A DNA stretch of 63,557 nucleotides, the filler included, from Bigelowiella natans CCMP2755 (taxonomy: Eukaryota; Protista; Cercozoa): assembly GCA_000320545.1 (NCBI GenBank). It is 4 parts of 4 records of this genome, joined end to end, with 100 filler letters (N's around TTAATTAATTAA, not from the genome) between each part and the next. Parts side by side here need not be neighbours in the genome. Positions count along the whole stretch, not along the records: positions 1 to 29,132 come from ADNK01000987.1; 3 more parts are not named here. One strand, written 5' to 3'. The notes under the pieces were generated by a model, which searched no databases, had not been told where the DNA came from, and worked only from the letters and a program-made list of their open reading frames with translations. The translations under genes and the position numbers were made by a program. Below, piece after piece: positions 7,891 to 46,195 of this stretch (positions are counted from its first letter, which is position 1; each line of letters starts with the position of its first letter).

Positions 7891-9166
7891 ATAGCGATGA
7901 GATGTGATGTTTTGTGGTGTGATGCAATGTGCGTATTATTCTTTTCTTCTTCCTCTACTTCTTCTTCTTCTTCCTCTTCTTCTCCATCATCACATCATCC
8001 TGGCCATCGACGCTCAGGCAGCGTTAACCGGGCACTTCGCTCTGAGGAATAATGCAGCCGACGTGCAAGCTAAGGAATCATCCCAGGAGACGTTTGTGTA
8101 TGTACCGCAGCGATTACGATTCTTTCCGTGGAAAAGGATGGGGATGATGATGTTGCTTCCTGTGCTGTTGGCGCTGTTGATGATGAGAAATAGAGTTTCA
8201 TACCGTTGGCAGCATGCATGGAGATGGGGGGGGTCATCACATCTTCTGTCTTCATTATGTGTAATCACGATTACAGAAACTTGTTTCGGAGTGTATTGCC
8301 GATATGGAAGGCGTTGAAAACTTGTGTTGCATCCCCCCCCCCCCCCCTTCCCTCCTGCTTGTTGATTAGAACGCTTTTGGGACTTGTTGCTGGGTCTTTA
8401 TTGGCGTCGTCCACGCATGATACGATGATCTTCGCATGGTGTGTGAATTAGGAAACGATGGCTCGACAATGATGATAATGATGACGACGATGATGATGAT
8501 GATGATGGCAGCTGACTGTGAAGCTGATTCCTTTTATCACTCCTTTCTACGGCAGGATGTGGTTCATAGGCCTCACGATCGTTCATGTGTTTGCGAACTA
8601 CAATGGGGTCCGGGCACTGCTCATCCCAACGTCCGGATTGATAGTACCCAAGAAAACAACCCCAATAGAATAGAGCACCGCTCTCAGCTGGCCATCAGAT
8701 CACCGTTCTACTCGCAAGCTGGCATCCTGTGCGTCATCGCTTTATGCTATGCTTCTGCTCCCCTCCCCCCCCCAGGCTGAACGAGACGCGCTTGGAGTTG
8801 GTTTTCGAGCGCTTTATCTCTGCGGCGACTGCTCCGGACGAAGCCGACGTGCGTAGTTGCGTGGTTATAGGGTTGTAAATGTGTCTTCGTGTCGTGGCGG
8901 CGCCGCATGATGCCGCGCTGCTGCCTGTTGTCTTTTCCCATCGCATTCTGCCATTCCCCCCCTTCATCTTATGACTAGGTTGGCGTGCGTGCCATCTCAA
9001 AGATTGAGCCGCTGTTTACGCCTCTACTCGACAGCATCCACTACTACAGGGTGGTGATTGACTGCCGTGAGATAAAATAGAGGGGGGGGGGAGAGAGAAG
9101 TGAGAGGGTTGGTCAAATACAGCCCATTTGAAACTCAAGCCCCAAATCCATTCAATCCAGCACGTC

Positions 9167-10739: not shown

Positions 10740-11400
10740 CGGATATTCAATAACTAGAAGATTGTAACCTATCTAGCTATGTATCCATGTGAGCGAATAC
10801 ATGTGTACGCACATGCATGATGTTAACGCGTATATACGTAGCCAGACACACCTAGACACGTCAACGCGTACCCAGATGTGATAGACACATCTAGACATGT
10901 CGATGTAGATGTCGTCCATGCTGGCATGTCTGATGTGTCTAGATCTGCTAGCTAGCTAGAGATGTCTTTCACACTCTAGCACTGTCTAGCTGTGCATGCA
11001 AGGCTAGAAGGCCTCTCCACATGCACTAGTGCAGCGTGCACGTGCTGTTGTGCATTATAGACATGTAATACCTATTATGTGCGGTCTAGATAGTTGCTTA
11101 CTGTACTTTCCATGTCCAGATGTGGACACGCAAAAAAGCGAACATTTCGTTGTAGATGACACTCTTTTCTAGATTCTCGATTTGCTGCTCTGAATTCGCT
11201 GCATGAATCAAATCAACATGTTTCACATGCACATCGCAATCAACAACGTTGCATTCACATGTGTCAAGATGAGCAAAAAGTAGAAGCAATGTGCTAGCAT
11301 GCTTCATTGATCGATGATGTGGGGCAAGAGTACGAGCGATGATGACAATGATGGAGATGCTGCGCCCATGCAACATCAAAGTCATTACAAACGTGGCATG
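10740..11400. other. TpG/CpA-rich degenerate intergenic island with dense NNNN-CTAG-NNNN insertions
   Basis: Eight perfect 4-bp-duplication/CTAG motifs plus one CTGG variant in 10769-11033; rich in CATG, TGCA and ACAC. Confidence 0.85.
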
Positions 11401-12479: not shown

Positions 12480-13400
12480 TATGTGTGAACCCTTTCTTGT
12501 GTAGGAAAGTCTGCACCATTGGAATTGCTTCATTCCTTGTGACAAATGGAGTGAGCAGGCTAGCAGGGCCCAGAGGGCTGCACAGGGCTGCATGTTTGTT
12601 GAGCAGATGTTTGTTCAGAGGTGGCACACATGCAGGGACATACATGTCCATCCATGTGCACATGGGTACAACACACACAGGTGTGTGGGGTGCGTGTCCT
12701 GGTTGCATCACGCGTGCGCGCCTGCGAGCCTTGACCTCACATGGTTGGGGATCGAGCTTCGAAATGAGTCAACCCCAACAGCATGCACAAACACGTCAAG
12801 TCCCCGCGGTCTACCGCGGTCTAGCTGGACAGTTTGCACTGAGTGCATTGCTCCGGTTTTTGCTTCACAGGCTTGTCCAGCTTGTTAGACTTTGACACAC
12901 AAACTTTGTTGGATCTTGGAAGTGAACACAGAACCAACCGATCGACCAATGGTTCTAGCTGTGATTGTTGAGCAGTGCAGTGTGCGCATTTTGCTGCTAG
13001 ACTGTGCGCGTGTTCATTGTCAATAGTCATCAACATCATGTACAAATGGCACAAAACTGTGACACCACACTGTCAATTTGACATCGCATGCACACATTAT
13101 GTTGTGAACGATGGCACACGCATGTACGTAGACATTGCACGCATGGCAAAATTTGGTTCGCATTCAAATGTAACAACTGACGGCACATCTTTCCTTTGAA
13201 TGCACACGTCTACGTGCACACTCGAATCGAAAATGCGACTGCACCACATACATCATACTTATATCACATTCTTCTTTATATTTGTCTGTTGTACATTGTA
13301 TTGCAACACAGATTTTAGACTGGAGAGTAATCTCATTTTCGAATATGTAGAGCATTGCTTTCAAATTTCCGTAAGGCTACAATGTTTACTCACATGATTC
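12480..13400. other. TpA-depleted degenerate intergenic island
   Basis: TA is scarce, TG/CA and CpG are abundant; CAGG-CTAG-CAGG at 12556-12567 plus several 5-10 bp duplications. Confidence 0.8.
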
Positions 13401-13543: not shown

Positions 13544-15310
13544 TCAGCCGTTGTGCTGGTTCCACCTGAGTGTCTGCAAGCTTGGGTAAGTATCCCATAT
13601 CTTCTCCTCTAGATGGATGTTGGGCTCACCAATATCAAGGTAAAGTTCTTTCAGCTTAGGTGCCTTTGGTAACGATCTAAGTATATCCTCTTGGGTCAGA
13701 AAGAAACCATTTACCTTCAGTTCTGTCATCGTCGACAACTGCTGTTGCTGCCCCTGATGGTGCATAATCTCGTCGTTCCTTTCTATCCCCCCTCTTCCGG
13801 CTCCTCCTCCTACAATTCTTCTAATTTTCACTTCCTCTTCTTCTTCTTCTTCATCTCCTCCATAGCTCTGTGGGATCTCCCCCCTCACCTTCAGCGCCTT
13901 TATCACATTCCGACCGAAGTCATGGGCAACTGCGTTCATGACACACTCGCTGCATAGCGCCCAATGAAATATCTCTAAATTTGGCATGATCATCGTCGGT
14001 AGGATGCTTCGTATGTCTAAGAAGATGAGAGTGCGTAGTGTCCGATGGCGAACCGTGTGCTTACGGTGACAAATCTCCTCGTTTTCAAGATGCTCGCATT
14101 TTATGAGGAAGAGGTCGGGATCATCGCATGCTATTTTAAGCGACTCGAGCACACTGCACGTGTCCAGTAGGCTGCTAAGCGTATTCATAGTGAGCGCATC
14201 GTTCAATAAAAGCTCAAGGCTCCGCAACTTTGGAAACAGCGGTAGGAAAGGCAGCAGAGAGTTGGTAAAAGGAACCGTCAGTTTGAGGAGCTGTGAGAAA
14301 TTTTGGCAGAATTTCTTCGTGAACCTTGAGGCGCATATCGGTCCAATGTCGAGGGACCGCATACTTGGCAGCGGACATTCTGCTAGCAGGCTGATGATCT
14401 CTTGACACGTCTTCGAGCTGACATCCCTAGCCTTCCCGGCAAGTTGGAGGTGTTCCAAAGCGCGTTGGTTTTGAGTGATGAGCGTTCGTAATGCCGATAG
14501 GCCTTCGATGCTGTCGTTGAAGCTCGACTTTTTCAGCATCTCCCAGCCGCTCACTTTACCCGTTCTCATATCCACCAAATCCCGCCCTTTCCTCATCCTC
14601 GGCTCAAACCATTCCAAGGGGACACGGATACTCCTGAGATTTCGGAACCGCCGCCACAGCATCGTCCGCATAGTGATTGAAGGCCTGGGTAAGGGTGAGA
14701 GATCTAAGACCTTCTTTTCGGCGCAAAATCTTTTGACCGCGTGGCGAAAGTACTTGCAAGATGCCTCGAGATTACCGGTGTGCGGCCATAAGAATACCAG
14801 AATCGGCGCTAAAAGGTCATATTGGACCTTATCCAGTCGCTGCGGAGGAGAACTGCTAGACAAGGATGAGGAGGATGAACTCTTCATGTCATCGACGTCA
14901 TCGAAAGGGACTGGAGTGTCTTCATACCGCCCCGTCAGGGTGTCTATGCTGTCATCACCTCTATTTCTTTTTTTACCCCCATTTCTTACACTGGGAAAAT
15001 CATTGATCTTTCTCTGTTTTTTTTTGTCGCCACGATTTCTCTGGCAGAACGTAGTCTCTTCATCAGCTTCATACCATGGAGGCGTTCTAGCCTTCGGTTC
15101 GTTCACGAGAGGAGTCACGGGGGGCTCAACTTTCATGTAAGAACGACGAGGTGAAGGAGTTGAGTAATGGATGTTTCTCATCCGCTTTCGTTTTCTTTCC
15201 CGAAAAACGCGGGGATTGTGCATACAGCCTCCAGGACCGCAAACACTATCGTCCTGTGCCTCAATGTTCCCCCCTCCGTCATTAGGATGGGGAAGCTTCT
15301 GCATCTGCAT
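13544..15310 (-). CDS. Intronless 588-aa leucine-rich-repeat (RNI/F-box-associated-like) protein
   Basis: Long uninterrupted ORF with a basic, NLS-like disordered N-terminus (RERKRKR, KKKQRK) and repeated LxxLxL motifs (NLRSIRV, ALEHLQL, SMRSLDI, KLRSLELL, VLESLKI, TLRTLIF, KLKELYL, SLQTLRW). Confidence 0.7.
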   Translation of the reverse strand: MQMQKLPHPNDGGGNIEAQDDSVCGPGGCMHNPRVFRERKRKRMRNIHYSTPSPRRSYMKVEPPVTPLVNEPKARTPPWYEADEETTFCQRNRGDKKKQRKINDFPSVRNGGKKRNRGDDSIDTLTGRYEDTPVPFDDVDDMKSSSSSSLSSSSPPQRLDKVQYDLLAPILVFLWPHTGNLEASCKYFRHAVKRFCAEKKVLDLSPLPRPSITMRTMLWRRFRNLRSIRVPLEWFEPRMRKGRDLVDMRTGKVSGWEMLKKSSFNDSIEGLSALRTLITQNQRALEHLQLAGKARDVSSKTCQEIISLLAECPLPSMRSLDIGPICASRFTKKFCQNFSQLLKLTVPFTNSLLPFLPLFPKLRSLELLLNDALTMNTLSSLLDTCSVLESLKIACDDPDLFLIKCEHLENEEICHRKHTVRHRTLRTLIFLDIRSILPTMIMPNLEIFHWALCSECVMNAVAHDFGRNVIKALKVRGEIPQSYGGDEEEEEEEVKIRRIVGGGAGRGGIERNDEIMHHQGQQQQLSTMTELKVNGFFLTQEDILRSLPKAPKLKELYLDIGEPNIHLEEKIWDTYPSLQTLRWNQHNG

Positions 15311-15835: not shown

Positions 15836-15997
15836 TTCATCATTGTTCATTGTTCAACCAGTTCGAGGCACTGCATTTTGCACGCTGCAAGTGTCTTGCA
15901 ACACTTTGGAAATGTAGTTTTTCATCATTGTTTCATTGTTTCATTGTTTCATTGTTCATTGTTCTTCATCATTGTTCATTGTTCATTGTTCATTGTT
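15836..15997. repeat. Degenerate (TTCATTG/TTTCATTG)n tandem repeat
   Basis: Direct reading of the sequence: ...ttcattgttcattgttcattgtt... Confidence 0.85.
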
Positions 15998-16108: not shown

Positions 16109-16540
16109 ATGGGGGCAAACTTAGCCAAAGCAGCCAAGAATGCAGAAAGGAACAAAGATTGGAGCAAGGTGCTCAAGCTGTTGTCCAAGCGTGCAGACAT
16201 CGAGCAAACGGACAAAGATGCGTCATGAAGATGCTGTTGGAGAAGAAGACACAACCTCGAAGCCGTTGATGCGGATGTTCGAATTCTGTTGAACGGGGCG
16301 TCTCATGAGGGTCACATGCTGGACGTCGTGAAGACGCTCCAGCGCTGTTGCTAGGTTGGAGAAGAGTGTTCCAGTGTTCACAAGGCATGTCAACATCGAA
16401 CCCGCATTGATGCGGACGGTTGGACTCCGTTGTTTGGTTGTGTTCGGCGTCTCGGAGGGGTCATCTGCACGCTCACGCCGTGAAGACGCTGTTGGAGAAG
16501 AAGGCCAACATCGACTAGTCGAGACGACCGATCGATGAAT
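16109..16540 (+). pseudogene. Ankyrin-repeat pseudogene disrupted by small insertions
   Basis: ATG 16109 gives MGANLAKAAKNAERNKDWSKVLKLLSKRADIEQTDKD. Frame-broken fragments follow: VVKTLLEK, NIE..IDADGWTPLF..ASRRGHL..AVKTLLEKKANIE, matching the ankyrin consensus G.TPL..A...GH..VV..LL...A.I. Confidence 0.8.
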
Positions 16541-17182
16541 TCGGTGCGACCATCATCAAGTTTCTTTCTTTTTTTCTTTCTGAGAACTCCTGGGGACAGC
16601 CCGCTCCATGCTAGCATGAACTGTCATGGACAACGAAATTCATTGTGGACAATGCTAGAATGTGATGCAACATGCATTCAATGTGTGTCACGTTGCCATG
16701 TCCATGATGACTTGCTGTGCTCGCAAGTGTCCAAGTGCATCCAACTTCGTCCGCAAATCGTGATGCTGTGCGTGCGATGCGAAACCAATGGCTGCCAAAA
16801 ACTCCCTTCGAGTTTGATCTATGCAAAGATGCTGTGTGGTGTGACTGACACGGCGTGCATGCGGCACGCACATTGCCAGATTACGTGATTGCACATGCAG
16901 TTGATCTAGCGATGCGATGGCCGTGCTGCGCACTGCTGAACACAAATTGCATTGAATCGATCGAACGACGACCACGTGTGCAGTATGGTAGCTAGCCATC
17001 CATCTAGCGGAATGCTGGACAGCATCAGAATGGCGTGACATGCTTGACACATGCAGTGCACCCCAGCTAGCCAGCATCCCAGCATGCACATCAAGATTCC
17101 TGCACATTGCACATGCACAGAGCAAGCTAGCAAGGGATGCAATGTCGGGCAACTCCCTGATGACCATCGATTTTGTTGCTCA

Positions 17183-19276
17183 TCAATCTATGTTGTCGCC
17201 ATCGCACCAATGAGGACCATTGCCATTGTGTCTACCCGGAGTGAACCAATCACGGCAACTCTCTGCTGCATCCCGGCATGAACTCAACTTCATGCTGTTC
17301 GCATAGATCTTGCAATTCCCCATGTACTCAATTGCTGGATCCATGGAGTATTGCAGATCCAAGTCATCTGGAATGAACAAGCCGCGGAGACCGCAATGCT
17401 GAGGAAAACTTGTAATCACGTTGTCAGCTTTACCCATTCCATGGCTCCCTTTGAATCTGTGCCCATGATTGAAAGCCACAACAATAAGCGTATCACCGCG
17501 TTTCGGTGTCCATCGGCGACACTGGATGTGTGAACGACGATCGTACCACCCATAGCTTCCTCTTTCTTCTCCGTTCCCTACTCCCGCAGCTGTCGAGCCC
17601 CTCATCGCAGCCGGTTCCTTTTCTAGGCAAGGAGCTTCTATGACACACACTGGAGATAGCTGTTCCTTCATACCCACACCAGATTTTGTGGATGGTGATA
17701 ACGACGACGATTTTGTGGCTTGGACAATGTGGTCCAGTATGTGTTTTTTAACATCTTCAAGTGTAGATCCGAAATGCTCAGGAATGTACGGAAGTTTGGT
17801 TACGTGCGAGGAATTTGGATGTGCTTGCTGCTCAAGTTTCGTGAGTCCTAAGATATCTCGGGAGACATCTGGTCCGGAAAATGCCCAGAATGACTGGGTA
17901 CGACTCTGGTGAGCGTGAAATACAAACTGTCCAGGGATAAATGAGCCGTTGTGTCGAAATGTGTGGGAGTACCAAAATACACATGACTTTTGAGGGGGAA
18001 TTCCATATACTAACGGACCATGCCTCTGAGCTGGAGCAATAAACGATATCTTTGAGCTAACTCCCTTTTGCGGCCTCTTTCGTGTCCAAGCGATAGCAAT
18101 CTCCATGTAGTATTCCATTGTTGGGGATCCTTTTGGCCTTACATCATCGAGAACAAAATCTACATAAAGCGGGCTCGTAATGCGATGTGCTACGCCATTT
18201 GGAAGCATGCGCACCAAACAGTTTATCCCACCATAGGCACCGTGGCATTCAGAATCTCCATGCGCTTCAATAATCGGGGCAAGCCATGATTTCCGGGTGT
18301 GTATGTGGAAGTGGTGGATGTGAATTGGAGGATGGCCTAAAGGTTCTCCGTTTTTGTCGGTGGGAAAGGTTGCAGAGCCTACCACGAAAAGTTCTCCTCC
18401 ATTGGCTTTGATTTCTTTGCTGAGTAAGCCGATATTCTTGATGGAGCCGCCTACAGACCAGTCATAGCCTCCTGTTCCAGATATTGGACCCACACGTTCA
18501 ATTGTCCAATGTATGGTCTCATTGCCGCCCCTAGTAAACCCGTTATCTCGTGACGACGAATTGGAGAAAGAATACCCACCTGTTCCTCCAAGATTATTAC
18601 ATCGCTGCCTAAACATCCTTGATTGTTGAATAGCTTTGGCAGATCTCATTGGACAGTGATTGGGAGGCTGACACAAACCCCAATAGTGATACTTATTACT
18701 GTTATACGCATTGTCGTCTGTGTAATGGTCGAGAGTGGAATGATGATCCTTTAGGGTGGTCCATCTGCAACTTGACCGAAGCTGAAAATACGCCCTTGCA
18801 TTCGAAAAATTTTTGTCACCGCCATTCACCCAAGGTACCCAATCTTGTTCTGCTGCGGGATCATTAATCCCGGCCGCTTTGGTAAGACGTACTATCTCAG
18901 CTGTTGGGCGGTCACTAAACATTTTGCAATCGAATTTCATTCCAGAAGGTATGTCATCTTCCAAAGGCGAACTCACCATCGAACCCATTATAATTGCAAG
19001 AATTGTGAGAAATGATGAGAAAATGAAGACTTTCGATGCCATAGACGTGTGATTGACCTCGCAGCACCATCTCCCTAAGTTTTTATTTGAAGATGGTGAT
19101 GTTTCTATTTTGGGCAGCGCTTTCTTCTCTCTGACTGATTTGTCGAGAGTCTTCGTTGGAGAAATGATTTTTGGTAAGCTGACAGAAGGTCTCAAAAGAG
19201 CACCATTTTCTGAGTCATCGCTTTCTATATCTACTAGGCTGCCCTGCGGGTCAGCACTCGTTTCCGCTCCTTTCAT
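17183..19276 (-). CDS. Intronless 697-aa type II membrane protein with His-rich metal-binding motifs (possibly copper monooxygenase-like)
   Basis: N-terminal cytosolic tail, one TM helix (VFIFSSFLTILAIIMGSMV) and a Cys-containing lumenal domain with HPPIHIHHFHIH, AHGDSEC, FHAHQ and FPQHC motifs. Confidence 0.65.
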   Translation of the reverse strand: MKGAETSADPQGSLVDIESDDSENGALLRPSVSLPKIISPTKTLDKSVREKKALPKIETSPSSNKNLGRWCCEVNHTSMASKVFIFSSFLTILAIIMGSMVSSPLEDDIPSGMKFDCKMFSDRPTAEIVRLTKAAGINDPAAEQDWVPWVNGGDKNFSNARAYFQLRSSCRWTTLKDHHSTLDHYTDDNAYNSNKYHYWGLCQPPNHCPMRSAKAIQQSRMFRQRCNNLGGTGGYSFSNSSSRDNGFTRGGNETIHWTIERVGPISGTGGYDWSVGGSIKNIGLLSKEIKANGGELFVVGSATFPTDKNGEPLGHPPIHIHHFHIHTRKSWLAPIIEAHGDSECHGAYGGINCLVRMLPNGVAHRITSPLYVDFVLDDVRPKGSPTMEYYMEIAIAWTRKRPQKGVSSKISFIAPAQRHGPLVYGIPPQKSCVFWYSHTFRHNGSFIPGQFVFHAHQSRTQSFWAFSGPDVSRDILGLTKLEQQAHPNSSHVTKLPYIPEHFGSTLEDVKKHILDHIVQATKSSSLSPSTKSGVGMKEQLSPVCVIEAPCLEKEPAAMRGSTAAGVGNGEERGSYGWYDRRSHIQCRRWTPKRGDTLIVVAFNHGHRFKGSHGMGKADNVITSFPQHCGLRGLFIPDDLDLQYSMDPAIEYMGNCKIYANSMKLSSCRDAAESCRDWFTPGRHNGNGPHWCDGDNID

Positions 19277-38941: not shown

Positions 38942-39919
38942 CATATATGCACATAAGAACCTGTACTCTGTAGGGACGGTTTGCACAAGGCCTGATGAAT
39001 TTTTAGATATCTGCGATGAAGAACGTGCGTAAACTAACGTATCTAGAGGCGGCCGCTCTCCTTCTATCCATCTTTCTTGCCTTGGAAGGGAAGATGGTGC
39101 TGCTGCTGCTGCGACATCTGCTGTTACGGATACTGGTGATGGTGGTGATGGTGGTGGTGATGATGATGACGACGACGAGGATGATGATGATCTCAAAGGG
39201 AAGGGTGAAGCGGATCGCCATAGTTGTTGCTTTTCTGCTGCTACAATACCACCCTCAGCTGCTGCCTCATCCTCAGGTGTGAAAAAGAGCGTTTGCATCC
39301 CTGTCAAATCCAGCCCGAGAATGTTGCTGCCATGAAGAGGATAAATGCATGCATACATACACACGCATATGCCGCACGAAACACCCGTGTCAATTTCCAT
39401 ATCATACCCATATGTTCACGAGAAAGTCAAATGAAAAAACAATATAGCAATAGTAGCAATAATGGTAACAATAAAAATTTAAAAGGGTACGACGTATTCG
39501 CTGCGCGACATCATCATGTTGTAAAGGCATATAAAAATAGTGAAGCATTCAAATCTTATACGAAGGAAAGGTGTGTATGATTAGAGTTTCCTTTTTATAC
39601 TCTATGTTTATGGATTATGCTACGATGTTGTTGTGTGAAATTACTGTTCGCAATTGTCGTCGCTCAAGTGACAGCCACCAATTTGAACCAAAAACCGATT
39701 TTTCAGGATAAACCCGCCAGCGCCACCCCTCCCCATCTTCTTATTCTGTCGTCGCCGATGACGATGATGTGCATGATGCTGTGCCATATTTAGCTCCTAT
39801 ACACAGCAGAACGATATCATGCTACTACAAGTTTATCACTCCCTCTCTGTAAGCTTCATTCCATCATTATTACTTATGTCTGATGCTGCATTCTAACGCG
39901 GGTAGGCATTGTTATTGTT

Positions 39920-39951
<32 letters not shown>

Positions 39952-41142
39952 GTCCTTCATCAACATCATCATCATCGTCATCATCGCTTCGATGACTGAC
40001 TTGCATTGTCGGGGTAGTTTTAAGGAGCGATTCCTCTATTGTGAGCCTTTTCCCACTACTCTGCTGTTAAGAGTAGTATGTAATAATAAAGCATGTCTCA
40101 GTAAATTGTCCATCATGGCCTCCTTAAAGGCGGAGGAGGATGATATACATGATAGATAAACAACACTAGGAATAGATTTCAACAGATAATATGCACACAC
40201 ACACACGCACACACGCACGCACGCAAACACCTCACAAATACTGCCACTGACCTCTGAGCGACTCGCCGTTGTTCCAATCCAATCATCTATGCTTGGTCTT
40301 TGAGATACTGAGATTTCGGAGTCATCATCGATATCATCATCGGTATTATCATCGTCACCATCACTATCGTCCCATTTTTCTTCGTTTTGATGATTTCTAT
40401 GGCGGCCATTCTTTGTACTCCTCTTTCTCCTCTTATCTACTGCCGAAGAAGACAAATGATAGTGCTTGTTTGTAGGAATCTTGCGCCACACTAGATTCTG
40501 AAATGAATACGCATCATCGATTTGATGGAGAAGATGAAAGATAGGAAGGGAGAGAGAGGTGTGTGCTGTGTGCTGAATGAATGAATGAATGATTGATTGA
40601 TTGATTGATAAAATCCATATTCATAAACTCATACTTATTGAGTGTTGATCGACGAGCGTAATAGGGAGTGTAGGTATAAAAACCGATATTATCGGCTGAT
40701 CAACAGCTGATCAATCAACCCGGGAGAAATGTACAATATACATCTACACGCAGATGATGTGATCTATTACTACCTGGAGATTCAAGACCCATGAGTCAGT
40801 GTAGCAGCTGTGCACTCGATAGTCACAACCCCCCGTAATTACCATCATTGCGGAAGGTGATAATTCCTGATGATGATGCTTCGACGATTCACTCGCAGAT
40901 GGCATTAATGCAGCTACATGAAGACTCTAAGTAGATATGAGGAAGGAAACATGGTGATCTACATGATGACGATGCAGAATTGCGGTATAAAGAATAAGAT
41001 CAGAGTCGTAATCATGTGAGCGGTTTGTGTGGATGAGCCGAGGGGCTGTAAACACTGAAATGTTGTATATATTGCAACGCACTATCGTCTCATGCACATC
41101 ATCAATGCCAAGTTTTGTCGCAATGGTACGTGGCGAGATGAT

Positions 41143-41218
<76 letters not shown>

Positions 41219-41719
41219 TATGCGTGTGTGCAAGCATAGCAGCTACAAAATATACCCTTGGGTTAGGCTGAGGGGCTATTGGATAATGGCCGGTACTGCT
41301 GCTGCTGCTACTGGGACAGAACCATACTCTTAAGAGAAGGTCAAGAATGCAGAGCTGCCAGTGTTATCACCACAAGGTTGTAGCAGCAGTAAGCACCAGT
41401 TAGCCATAATATAGAGGTTTGAAGAGGGGAGGAAGGACCATAAGAGGGATAACAAGCAGTAGAAGAAAGGAAGGAGGGGACACAAGAGCCCGCATCGCAG
41501 CAGTGCGAAGTGGTCATTATCATATTTACAACAGTTCTTTCCCTAAATCTTTCTTCTAGCTGCTCAGTAGAAGATTGTGTTCTCCTCGCCCTCAAAATAA
41601 GACAAAATAGACTGGCCCCAACCTCCATCATCATCATCATCATCGTCGTTATCTTCATCTTCGTCATCCCCATGTATACACTCATTAATTAAGATCACCA
41701 TCTCCACTACTGCTGCTGC

Positions 41720-41757
<38 letters not shown>

Positions 41758-43397
41758 TAATAATCATACTTCCTGTAGCGTCTCCCTTTCATTTGATCCC
41801 CCAAACACGTACATGCGGTCGTCCCACACAACAGCGCTGTGACCTCCTCTCGCCTGGGGCTTTTTGCCTCTAAATCTAATGATGTAAGTTACAACGATTT
41901 TATTTGCTGGCAAATCAACCGTGTGTGTGTTTGGGACGTATGTAGAAATATGTATACCATGCAGTACGCATGTGTGCATCGATAATGTGTGTTGTAATTC
42001 TTGTATGCTTGATTGTAGCACATCCAAGCATTGCTGCTGAACGATCCCTGCTACTACGCTTTGCTGCTAGTATGATGGAATAGAACCGGAGGATGATGAT
42101 GGACTTTAGATACATGTGTAAGAATAATAACAATAGCACCTGAGCTTAGCAAAAGAACTGGTTGACGTGTCGAATTCCCACGTCTCGTCCGAGTACTGCC
42201 CTCCATTTTCCACAGTATAGCCTCCAAAGATAATGATACGGTTGTGCCATCTTACAGCTGAATGCCTGTCTCTTCCCGATGGCGCAAGCGGCGATGACGA
42301 CAACTCCAATTGTGATGACGACGATATTGAAGAAGTTGATGAGGGACGCTGCAGATGACCAGCATCTGCGACTTGGAGCTTAGTCCACCACAAATGCGGA
42401 TATGAGAAGGCTAGGATGTCGGAGAAGTACTGCCCATTATTCGACCCACCAAAGAAGTATACTGTATTTCCTATACGTGTTGCAGAATGATGGCCTCTAG
42501 CTTCTGGTCTATAAAGAGGGAGGCTATTGCTGCTGCTGCTGCTGCTGTCTAAGTGTGCAAATGGGAGAACGCCTTGGTGTAGATGAGGAGGAAAGGAGGA
42601 CGGCCGCGTAAGCGTCCACTGCGATGAAGACACCGAGAACATCCATATCTTTTACGTAGTAAATCAAATACATAGTACCGACCTTATTAGGAGATACACT
42701 GCGAAAATCCATAATACTAACAATCGCAGAAATCTAATAGGTGCTAAAAAGAAAAGTTCCAAGATGTGGTAGAATATGACACATCTTGAGACATTCTATT
42801 TATGATTATAGGAGGAGGAGGAGGAGGAGGAGGATGATGATGATGATGATAATGATGATGACGACGACGACGGACACAATATGTATCGTGTTATCCTAAC
42901 AAAAGATTTCTTAAATTGAGATAATTTGATAGTATGTATGACCTCATTGAAGCACATCATATCGGTATAGCATCCACCGAAGACCTGAAAATTGGGGAAA
43001 TGGCGAATTGTTACCAATGTTCTACATGTTTCTATGTGTTATGATTTATATATAAGAGATCTGAAGTTGTGGACAGTGAAAGTACCATGATCGAGTTTAT
43101 ATCAGGGAGAAATGTTGCTGTATGGCCCTGCATCCCCATTGGGTGTACGCTTCCCTTAATTGGGACTCTACCCCAGCTCCATATTTTGTTATGATGATGA
43201 GAATTAAATATAAATCCTCCACGATGATGATGATGCGTGCCATTGTTATTCACGTGTCCATCCTAACAAGGAGAGAGCCACTGCATGAATCGCCTAGTCG
43301 GAAGAAAATAAACCATGACGTATACCTTGTTGCTTCCCCTAATGGTTGGTTGCGCTGCACCCGCCACCGCCAAAATGCAGAGGAAAACGAGCATCAT
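38214..43397 (-). CDS. Kelch-repeat (beta-propeller) type I membrane protein, multi-exon
   Basis: Signal peptide MMLVFLCILAVAGAAQP from ATG 43397. Kelch repeats GMQGHTATFL..IMVFGG, RGHHSATRIGNTVYFFGG, RDRHSAVRWHNRIIIFGG and RGGHSAVVWDDRMYVFGG. C-terminal TM ALMVAVLIIFTLFVWNMYL; stop at 38214-38216. Confidence 0.8.
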
Positions 43398-43810
43398 CGT
43401 GCAGCGGCCCTGAGCTCCATTGCGATCCTGGAGCGTTGAGGGGTTACTATTCCATTATTCAAAATTTCAAAAGCCCATGATCGTACTCTCCCTCGGGATT
43501 TTCGGGGATTTAGTCAAATTATGTATGGAAACAAGGAGAATTATAGTCTGCGACAACCTATTCTTCCCCCTCTACTATGTCCCTTGTCGCAAGTTTCGAA
43601 CTGTTCATACGTGTAGCCTCATGCCACCGAGGCTCGCACAAAAAAAATGTTCTACAAGCCAAATACGTCACATTGTCTGCATCTTGTAGAACACTTTTTT
43701 TTTGGTCGAAGCACCTTGATGATCAAACCAGAATTCAAACTCTTCACTGAGAGTGATGAGTTTGAACACATGATGTTAGCAAGAATCATGCACTGTCAAC
43801 AACATGCACA

Positions 43811-44136
43811 TGTTGCGCGTAAGGTGTTCACAGGCCGAGGCGCTACGTGCACAAGTAGGCAGGGGGGGGGAAAGGCACGTTTGCTTCCTTTTGAAGAGTT
43901 TTGTTTATTTTTATTAAAGATTATATTTTTGTTAAATCGTGCACTGCGTAATCATTCGCGAAGCTTTCGCGAATGCCGCCGCACGTGGGGCAGCACACTT
44001 CCGGTGTGCTGCCATGAGTCCCGCCGGAACCCACGTGCCTATGCTGTATTAATATCTACGTTATCTATATTCTATATCCGCGACAACCCCTTTGTTGTCG
44101 CACGTGACTTGTGCCCGCGTAGTGGTACGCGCTACA
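43811..44136 (-). repeat. 3' LTR (326 bp)
   Basis: Begins TGTAGCGCGTA right after the PPT and ends TACGCGCAACA (11-bp inverted termini, one mismatch). Contains AATAAA on the element strand. Confidence 0.85.
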
Positions 44137-44187
44137 CCTCCCCCAAGTCACGTTGCTCCTTCCTTCCTTCCTTATTCCCTTAGACCT

Positions 44188-46195
44188 TCATCGCTTTCGG
44201 AACTTCACCAACCACCAGGTAATAGATTCCTCTCTAACCTTATCTCCTTTGTCGCTTACCCAGAACTCACCTTCGTCCTTAGGTTCGTGTCCATACCAGC
44301 CCTCTGCATCAAGGTCCCCCAGGACCTTATACCAGTGCTCAAAGGGTAAGTCGGGAACAGCTAGGTAGAGTAGCTGATATTTTCCGTCCTTTATTTTCAT
44401 AGCTACCCTCTCCATATTTCGTAATCCAGGGTAGCCTAGATAGACAATCTTCATGCGCCAATCGTCGTTCACCCTGACCTTATTGTTTCCATATTCCACA
44501 TCGAACTTAGGTCGGGGTCCTAAACAAGGCATTGCTCGCTCCCACACAGTAGGGTTTACTTTAACATCCTCTAGGAGCTTCTCACCGATATCATAATTCT
44601 TTAGGTGACTGATGTGGCGCAAGGTGACCCTGTTCCCATCATAGATGTAGTACTGCTTCCTCCCCTTCCTCTCGGTAACCTTTGCAACGCCACCCCAGAA
44701 GGGGTCTTGTTTATTTCTCGATCTCAGATTTACCTTGGCCCTAACATACTGTCCTTCCTTTAGAACTCGGCCATCGTACGGGACCTTCTCGTCTTCGCTC
44801 TCGGTATCGTCGTCGTTGTCGTCGCCTTCTTCCCTCTCCTTATCCTTGATACCTCCCCCAGACGTGAAGGTGTCGTTTACTAACCCTTGTATCTTGTCTG
44901 GTGTGGTGCTATTTATCCTGCTTAGGTTGGCCAAGGTGCGGTGGAGTCGCTCTACCTTGGAGTTGGACTGGGCATAGTATACAGGTGAGGCATCAATATT
45001 AGGGTGTGGTAGCTGTAGAAGAGAGGTCTCATTATCCACATGTAACTTCTTTGGTATCTTGTTTATGCTAACTTCATCAGGGATAGCCTGGAGCTCAGAC
45101 TCCCAGGTACGGTAGCAGTTAGTAAGCCTCTGCTTATATAAGCCTTTGTTCTTCTTAGCAACGTTGACCTTGATAATCTTTTTAACCCAGCACTTTCCAG
45201 TGGCCACATCAACGAAGGTAAGGTAGTGATAGCCATCGTACTTATAAACATCAATTTGCACGATATCTAAGAAGTTCCTTGCTTTGATTTTCTTAGATGC
45301 ACGGCTCTTGCTGGACTCCTTGGTGGCGACGCCTGCCGCCTTCAAGCTGGAGCACCTGCAGCCACGCAGGTATGTCCTTATCTCTTTTAGCTTGTAGGGC
45401 CAGTAGTAATGGTAGAGTAGAGCAGTGATATGGTTTTCTCCTACGTGTGCAGGTCCATGGGCGGTAAAGAGAAGGGCTCCCCTGGTCCGCCGTGGCACGT
45501 AGGTACGCCTAACATTATTAGTGTATACATATATCCTATCACTAAGTACCTCATGCTTGTGTTTGTATTTATCCAGGTGTTCTTGAAGGTGCTGGAGCTC
45601 CTCTGGCTCAGGCAGGAAGTCGCCGTCCTCGAAGGTAATCGCGTTAACCATAGGGGTGACCTGGGTAGGGACTTTCTTTTCGAACAGCCTGCTGAAATAG
45701 TCAGCAAGCTGCTTGTCTCCTGGTGCGTAGACCACTGTCCTCTTGTCCCTAAACTCTTCCGTGTCCGCCCTCATAGCTGCATACTCATCGTTAGGCGCTT
45801 CGAGCTTGCGGTCGATGCCTAGGAGGGGCTTGTGGTCAGTCATTAAGGTGAAGCTGGGCACCGACAGCAGGTAGTATCTTAGTTTCCTCTGCGCCTCAGT
45901 CATGGCTTTATACTCTCCTTTTGTAGGGCTGTACTTGGCCTCAGCTGCTGTGCAGGCCCTGCCCCACACCCGTATGATCTGCTGGTCTTGGGTAAGTACA
46001 GCAGCCATACCTAGCTTAGACCAGTCTGTCCATAGGGTAGCTGGTCTAGTAGTGTCTAGCTTAGCATTCAATAGGGTGTTGCTGCATAACTTTATTAGGT
46101 TATCGAAGTGGGCATCAAGGCCAGCCTTGGCCCACACCTTAGCGAAGCTGAGGCCTACAGAGTTCTCCTTCCGGTAAGCAGTAGTAAAAGCAGCT
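44188..46195 (-). CDS. pol: Gypsy Pol (partial): RNase H, HHCC-integrase, SH3-like domain and C-terminal adenine-MTase-like domain
   Basis: RNase H: WTDWSKLGMAAVL, YSPTKGEYKAM, TDHKPL, ADYFSR. Zinc finger: H..AHVG...C.C. Integrase core: VQIDVY, YLTFVDVATG, HVDN, QSNSKVERLHRTL. The frame stays open up to the gap. Confidence 0.9.

Follow-up and report, generated by a model that had tools for sequence, protein, structure and literature searches.

Among described systems, those closest to the scars reported here include the excision footprints of Tc1/mariner transposons (for example, TA-CAG/CTG-TA for Sleeping Beauty), in which both target copies are kept around a short constant insert ascribed to the element's terminal 3' overhangs, with variants explained by mismatched overhang pairing. 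piggyBac elements also make a 4-bp staggered target cut and duplicate TTAA, but they require that sequence and excise precisely, leaving no scar. Topoisomerase II-type de novo duplications of 2-4 bp are plain tandem duplications. Groups of the PIF/Harbinger type (PHIS) duplicate TWA, AT, ANT or CWG, or target C-TNA-G (PMC4482050).

The scars of the alga Bigelowiella natans have the form NNNN-CTAG-NNNN, in which the two outer 4-mers are identical. Like Tc1/mariner footprints, they keep both target copies around a short constant insert that comes in variants, but the duplication is 4 bp at [A/C]NN[G/T] rather than TA, the core is CTAG, no Tc1/mariner transposase matched in the genome and no donor was found in the sequence searched. 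Unlike piggyBac, they have [A/C]NN[G/T] rather than TTAA as target, in a genome that gave no piggyBac transposase match. As in topoisomerase II-type events, the 4-bp duplication fits a filled-in 4-nt staggered break, but here a constant CTAG separates the two copies. PIF/Harbinger elements are present in the genome, in several families with open frames, and their ends and duplications are unlike the scars. The number of fixed scars, ~4x10^4, is far above any case that we know of. Excision footprints as such are a known kind of lesion; what is unusual here is the form (a 4-bp duplication plus CTAG), the uniformity, the number and the lack of a visible donor. A full-text literature search, with the genome paper and the provirophage paper outside its scope, returned no description of such scars in Bigelowiella or elsewhere.

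The assembly comprises 91,405,885 bases in 3,736 contigs, includes 18S genes and derives from a genome reported to be haploid and sequenced with Sanger and 454 data (PMC12730881). We refer to the whole stretch of DNA analysed (63,557 nucleotides, filler included; contig C2750) as the window. Statistics were computed on a sample of 226 kb, made up of the window and 197 kb of five other contigs and extended to 260 kb in some searches (~0.25% of the genome), with a G+C content of 45%. Within this sample, 96 of 634 CTAGs (15.1%) were flanked by identical 4-mers, compared with 2.5 expected, while matching flanks were found for at most 2.8% of occurrences of any of twenty control cores. Flanks of 3, 5 or 6 bases around CTAG matched at chance level, cores of 5 to 40 bases starting with CT and ending with AG showed no enrichment in the sample, and a blind scan of all pairs of core and duplication length revealed, besides CTAG, plain tandem repeats only. 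Both copies are thus kept and the duplication is exactly 4 bp, a fixed length as expected of an excision footprint. Genome-wide, the 12-mer CATGCTAGCATG occurs 3,828 times versus 7 for its reversed control, an over-representation of ~550-fold. Scaling this count by the share of CATG among duplicated 4-mers (8 of 96) gives a total of ~46,000 scars and the sample density of 0.42 scars per kb gives ~39,000, so that the genome contains about 40,000 (about 39,000-46,000). Together they contribute 0.3-0.4 Mb, and ~15% of the CTAGs in the sample belong to one.

In the window, the scars were read against an ankyrin gene, whose features are as follows.

16109..16545, plus strand: ankyrin-repeat pseudogene, from three-frame translation; 85% DNA identity to the 5' end of a paralog on contig C867
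16335..16346, no strand: scar CGCT-CCAG-CGCT (variant core) in ankyrin repeat 2; neither repeat 3 nor the paralog has it
16347..16358, no strand: scar GTTG-CTAG-GTTG in ankyrin repeat 2, from sequence and paralog alignment
16367..16378, no strand: scar TGTT-CCAG-TGTT within a 16-bp insertion, of which the scar explains 8 bp, from paralog alignment
16511..16522, no strand: scar TCGA-CTAG-TCGA; its deletion gives KKANIETT, as in the paralog

The pseudogene starts with MGANLAKAAKNAERNKDWSKVLKLLSKRADIEQTDKD and continues with frameshifts and stops, all frames being disrupted on three-frame translation; its translation begins MGANLAKAAKNAERNKDWSKVLKLLSKRADIE and includes the fragments DADGWTPL and VKTLLEKKANI. 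An imperfect (TCATTGT)n / (TTCATTG)n microsatellite lies at 15925-15997, ~110 bp 5' of the start codon. Searching the same genome at the DNA level identified the paralog (G000:C867:6925-7988; L010 1508-2571), a near-intact ankyrin ORF of ~350 amino acids that carries none of the window's 8-mers and has a scar of its own, CGTG-CTAG-CGTG (L034 7260-7271). This scar is the sole frameshift between the two long ORFs of the paralog, with Ank_2 (Pfam) matched on both sides (E = 4e-35 and 3e-12). Because this single defect is one scar, inactivation of the paralog looks recent; no transcript product of it was found in the protein collection searched. The window copy, with its homology to this gene and no intact frame, is an ankyrin pseudogene, as a first reading made from the sequence alone had proposed.

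Ankyrin repeat 3 of the pseudogene reads gtgaagacgctgttggagaag at 16480-16500 and contains no 8-mers, while its interrupted counterpart in repeat 2 is present as described earlier, beginning at 16328 and not 16329. Deleting CTAGTCGA from the window copy yields aaggccaacatcgagacgacc, which is the sequence of the uninterrupted paralog (L010 2380-2400), and the two adjacent 8-mers of repeat 2 form a 16-base gap when aligned to it. Their removal therefore restores not only the repeat-3 sequence, as the sequence-only reading had stated, but also the exact paralog sequence. The same reading held that ANIE reappears once the TCGA-CTAG-TCGA 8-mer is taken out, and the resulting KKANIETT does match the paralog. 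The TGTT-CCAG-TGTT scar reported at 16367 is there, but it is embedded in a 16-base insertion of which the other 8 bases (gtgttcac) depart from the pattern. Alignment to the paralog showed the predicted 8-bp NNNN-CTAG insertions, but the indels also include +4, +6 and these 8 odd bases and are not all of the 4+4 type. All of the sequences quoted in the earlier reading were found in the window.

Diverged duplicates elsewhere in the genome extend the comparison. The pair L045 and L046 differs by the 8-bp indel AAGT-CTAG-AAGT, and the pair L039 and L044 by ACAG-CTGG-ACAG and two decayed-looking ones, three of six indels being 8 bp long. An ancestral empty site, with one copy of the 4-mer and no insert, is thus represented by repeat 3, the C867 paralog, L039/L044 and L045/L046. 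Three independent comparisons (with repeat 3, with the paralog and between the diverged duplicates) thus show the 8-mers to be insertions, each made up of CTAG (or CCAG/CTGG) and a duplicate of the adjoining 4 bases. This is the polarity originally proposed, and neither of the observations named in advance as speaking against it was made, as the paralog lacks the window's 8-mers and the enrichment is confined to the 4+4 form. In the alignments of L039/L044, L042/L043 and L045/L046, transitions make up 77% of substitutions (141/183), with changes from CA/TG to CG prominent, a spectrum that would be expected under CpG methylation and deamination.

Across the window, identical flanking 4-mers were found at 15 of the window's 79 CTAGs, versus 0.3 expected, and these scars fall into two patches (10769-11033 and 16347-17134) and one lone site at 12556. 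The four further scars that the sequence-only reading had listed proved to be exact NNNN-CTAG-NNNN sites.

16607..17134, no strand: patch of four scars in the interval that separates the pseudogene from the neighbouring gene's stop codon
16607: scar CATG-CTAG-CATG
16651: scar AATG-CTAG-AATG
17063: scar CCAG-CTAG-CCAG
17123: scar CAAG-CTAG-CAAG
10769..11123, no strand: second patch, eight CTAG scars at 10769, 10848, 10887, 10948, 10972, 10982, 11000 and 11022
10917 and 11112: second-patch variants CATG-CTGG-CATG and ATGT-CCAG-ATGT, respectively
12556..12567, no strand: isolated scar CAGG-CTAG-CAGG
17183..19276, minus strand: intact, expressed gene of 697 amino acids, function unknown, from the ORF list

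The second patch (10769..11123) is single-copy in the genome, which rules out a repeat family as its origin. The 697-aa protein is identical at 692 of 697 residues to an MMETSP transcript product, from which we conclude that the gene is expressed; the transcript probably comes from another strain, which would account for the five differences. No Pfam domain was found in this protein, and the scar patch starts 50 to 60 bp past the stop codon of its gene. The gene is intronless. Its product contains several cysteines and the motif HIHHFHIH, and is related only to two proteins from metagenomic or Logan data (25-32% identity). A 588-aa ORF at 13544-15310 on the minus strand had no Pfam match; its N-terminal part is basic and of low complexity, and its C-terminal part is rich in leucine. 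A search of metagenomes for orthologous contigs found none.

The duplicated 4-mers reveal a clear target preference. Of the 96 sites, 81 carry A or C at position 1 and 81 carry G or T at position 4, and 68 fit [A/C]NN[G/T] as a whole, a pattern matched by 23.6% of 4-mers overall (p = 2e-22). As targets, CTAG and CATG are enriched 33-fold and 15-fold, respectively, and 25 of the 96 flanking 4-mers are palindromic. Such twofold symmetry is what would be expected if a dimeric transposase or integrase made a 4-bp staggered cut. Scars are also strongly clustered, with a median distance between neighbours of 70 bp in single-copy DNA versus 840 bp under random placement, and single sites were hit repeatedly, as in ATCT-CTAG-ATCT-CTAG-ATCT, CATG-CTAG-CATG-CTAG-CATG and runs of CTAG. 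Because every event adds CTAG and a second favoured 4-mer, the process makes its own targets, which can explain the patches. Those that we looked at (the window patches, L020 1238-2072 and C867 8371-8715) lie just 3' of ORFs; the last is a dense patch 380-730 bp 3' of the C867 paralog.

Core variants are too frequent to be mutated copies of CTAG. Genome-wide, 4,850 CATG-flanked sites have a C[CT][AG]G core, of which 1,022 (21%) are not CTAG, and the first 50 sites listed include 16 with CTGG or CCAG and none with CCGG. The like T-to-C change at a T:A pair of the flank accounts for 77 + 61 = 138 sites, an upper bound because CACG-type scars decayed at CpG contribute too. Comparison of 1,022 with 138 makes CTGG/CCAG ~7 times too common for decay, so that of the two origins offered earlier for CCAG, variant or decayed CTAG, the first stands and the second fails as the main source. 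CTGG/CCAG belongs to the same process and is mostly a primary product. The ratio 138/3,828 further implies that the scars are young, since per-site change of this single type amounts to at most ~1.8%. CCGG as a primary core decaying through CpG was rejected, as it was found at 0 of the first 50 sites listed. Six-base CT[AG][CT]AG cores between CATG flanks number 47 genome-wide versus 1 for the control and consist of 29 CTATAG, 10 CTGCAG (21%) and 8 hybrids. Independent mutation of CTATAG cannot yield doubles that outnumber singles, so CTGCAG is taken here for a further primary class, with a share (21%) equal to that of CTGG/CCAG among 4-base cores. In the sample, X4-CTATAG-X4 was found at 2 of 32 sites, not significant against 6-mer noise, and the genome-wide count decides the matter.

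From the polarity, the 4+4 form, the symmetric targets, the clustering, the genome-wide scale and the core-variant ratios observed here, we infer an element, its end sequence and its cleavage geometry. We lean, with confidence only slightly on the positive side, to the view that each 8-mer is the footprint left when a cut-and-paste DNA transposon was excised from a haploid nuclear genome, the element having 5'-CTR...YAG-3' ends and duplicating 4 bp of its target. Such an element would insert at a 4-bp staggered cut, preferably at [A/C]NN[G/T], and so duplicate 4 bp. About four fifths of events would involve 5'-CTA...TAG-3' ends, and the remaining fifth or so 5'-CTG...CAG-3' ends. When mariner and Sleeping Beauty excise, the cut in the non-transferred strand falls 3 nt within the element; a cut of this kind inside both ends would here leave a 3-nt 3' overhang (CTA or CTG) on each flank, and it is this geometry that predicts the 5'-CTR...YAG-3' ends. 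The overhangs may then pair over 2 nt, CTA with CTA through TA/TA to give CTAG, and CTG with CTG through two G.T wobbles to segregate as CTGG and CCAG in the two daughter strands, while rare joining without overlap would give CTATAG or CTGCAG. A haploid cell has no homologue as template, so end-joining would fix the scar. Since each scar adds CTAG, the most favoured target, and a favoured 4-mer, scars would draw in more insertions, so that CTAG-rich patches build up between genes; within the ankyrin gene, the scars act as frameshift mutations. Several points count against this view: end-joining footprints are usually more variable than the ~99% uniformity seen here, a non-specific 4-bp duplication and CT...AG ends are combined in no superfamily that we can name, and the families that lend their chemistry (Tc1 and mariner) have no transposase in this genome and duplicate TA rather than 4 bp.

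No donor was recovered in 226-260 kb, whether from exact 12-nt inverted repeats accompanied by a 4-bp duplication, from 10-nt inverted repeats with one mismatch allowed and grouped by starting dinucleotide, or from CTR...YAG pairs up to 8 kb apart, none of which delimited an element with a 4-bp duplication, CTR...YAG ends and inverted repeats. Recurrent words adjoining CTAG were absent from the sample, and longer cores between CATG flanks, searched genome-wide, were compound scars only, with no common inverted repeat. A resident element with scar-matching termini and duplication was thus absent from the 226-260 kb and from the longer CATG-flanked cores, but a low-copy element is expected less than once in 0.25% of a 91-Mb genome, which makes its absence weak evidence. 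For the genome as a whole, eight DDE transposase genes and no more have been reported (PMC12730881). In our searches, Harbinger-like (DDE_Tnp_4) transposases gave the most numerous DDE transposase matches (15, in at least three families), followed by hAT-like (three ORFs, at C2149:11338, C2351:208686 and C2036:88857) and pogo-like (two ORFs, at C2661:202080-202535 and C2845:6046-6501) transposases, while Tc1 (DDE_3), mariner (Transposase_1), piggyBac (DDE_Tnp_1_7) and MULE transposases had no match in the genome; control genomes likewise had none for piggyBac. The Harbinger-like genes (L039-L048) lie on C777, C1193, C2929, C1777, C1458, C891, C2101 and C2246, with three matches on C2929, open frames of up to 527 amino acids and copies 90-95% identical.

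No link to the scars emerged for any of the transposases found. The ends of the Harbinger-like copies, taken where inter-copy homology stops, read ...ACAATGCCC or ...CAATGC and not ...YAG (in longer form, ...GATTTRACAATGCCC or ...TTGTRCAATGC), and both these ends and the duplications of known PIF/Harbinger groups differ from the scar. Membership of Tc1/mariner was rejected on the duplication, 4 bp of variable sequence rather than TA, and on the lack of a transposase match; that of piggyBac on targets of [A/C]NN[G/T] rather than TTAA, again with no transposase match (the control genomes giving none either). An 8-bp, hAT-style reading fails because the added bases are 4 from the target plus a constant CTAG and the flanks are not AG...CT as required.

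The empty donor search, together with the extreme uniformity of the product and the absence of Tc1, mariner, piggyBac and MULE transposases, is what would be expected if no donor took part, an origin that we nevertheless regard as unlikely. A free-standing (domesticated, viral or other) nuclease or transposase would then break [A/C]NN[G/T] with a 4-bp stagger, and the 3' ends would gain CTR and join, either by copying of the last 3 nt of an RNA ending ...YAG (abortive target-primed reverse transcription at both ends) or by integration of a minimal end fragment. The few transposase genes reported for the genome (PMC12730881) and the lack of a donor element in 260 kb point the same way. The symmetric target preference, however, speaks against an endonuclease of the LINE type, given the asymmetric action of such enzymes, abortive reverse transcription predicts a ladder of longer copies of which none was seen, and the correlated ends (29 CTATAG and 10 CTGCAG versus 8 hybrids) better fit the paired inverted ends of an element. 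We also know of no enzyme that adds a fixed trinucleotide to DNA ends. Somewhat more doubtful again is that the scars arise with no resident mobile element at all, through an enzyme that cuts [A/C]NN[G/T] with a 4-bp stagger and repair that adds CTR to each 3' end, as an undescribed, self-reinforcing mutational process. A donor-free origin would mean ~40,000 identical 8-bp insertions, CTAG-rich intergenic patches and ongoing gene inactivation in a haploid alga.

An abundance of uniform scars in an assembly without donors would also follow if the sequenced nuclei had previously lost tens of thousands of germline-limited elements by excision, with duplication-CTAG-duplication remaining at every site, but such programmed or somatic DNA elimination is very improbable: the scars frameshift coding sequence, their flanks are mutated and they differ between old duplicates, which marks them as inherited, ageing mutations and not as junctions remade in each generation, and nuclear dualism is, to our knowledge, not known in chlorarachniophytes. 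We give equally little credence to palindromes such as CATGCTAGCATG being selected cis-elements (for example, terminator or protein-binding sites) rather than mutational scars. The ~550-fold excess of this 12-mer and the position of the inspected patches just downstream of ORFs suit that idea, and patches may have a secondary function, but the flanking 4-mer varies, with only 25 of 96 palindromic, the same form frameshifts coding repeats, and tandem reuse (ATCT-CTAG-ATCT-CTAG-ATCT) resembles repeated insertion. Least credible of all is replication slippage, which would duplicate 8 bp in tandem, or an artefact of sequencing or assembly. Period-8 tandem repeats do yield a 3- to 5-fold background for many cores and the assembly does combine Sanger and 454 data, but CTAG stands 36-fold against that background and most sites hold a single CTAG, with no prior CTAG-NNNN unit to copy. 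Target preference, clustering and age-dependent decay at the sites fit neither slippage nor artefact, and we know of no artefact that duplicates 4 bp and adds CTAG.

If the scars are indeed excision footprints, they would form a fossil record of ~40,000 excisions that gives the ends (CTR...YAG), duplication length and target preference of a transposon outside any superfamily that we can name, one not found in the sampled sequence; should there be no donor, the novelty would lie in the process itself. For a haploid genome, they describe a route by which frameshifting scars build up, and they may seed hot spots that shape intergenic DNA. Scars are also usable as presence/absence markers between strains.

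Several smaller observations accompany these results. A dinoflagellate origin of the DNA was rejected, as the spliced-leader motif was not enriched (7 versus 4). The rDNA copies were uninformative as an internal control, because the six 18S-bearing loci diverge outside the gene: complete 18S genes lie on at least six contigs (L001-L006: C508, C1247, C1914, C1917, C1918 and C1238), beyond the rDNA the sequence differs among loci, and the units look dispersed or located at different chromosome ends rather than arranged in one uniform array. A third relic of the ankyrin N-terminal region, strongly decayed (…SKVLQLL…KRADIG…), was found on the minus strand at G000:C1794 ~7940-8070 (L037), with scars nearby at L037 7291 and 7835. 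On the reverse strand of L044 at ~2594, one scar has a 5-bp duplication, CCGTT-CTAG-CCGTT, and lies exactly at the end of the L039/L044 homology.
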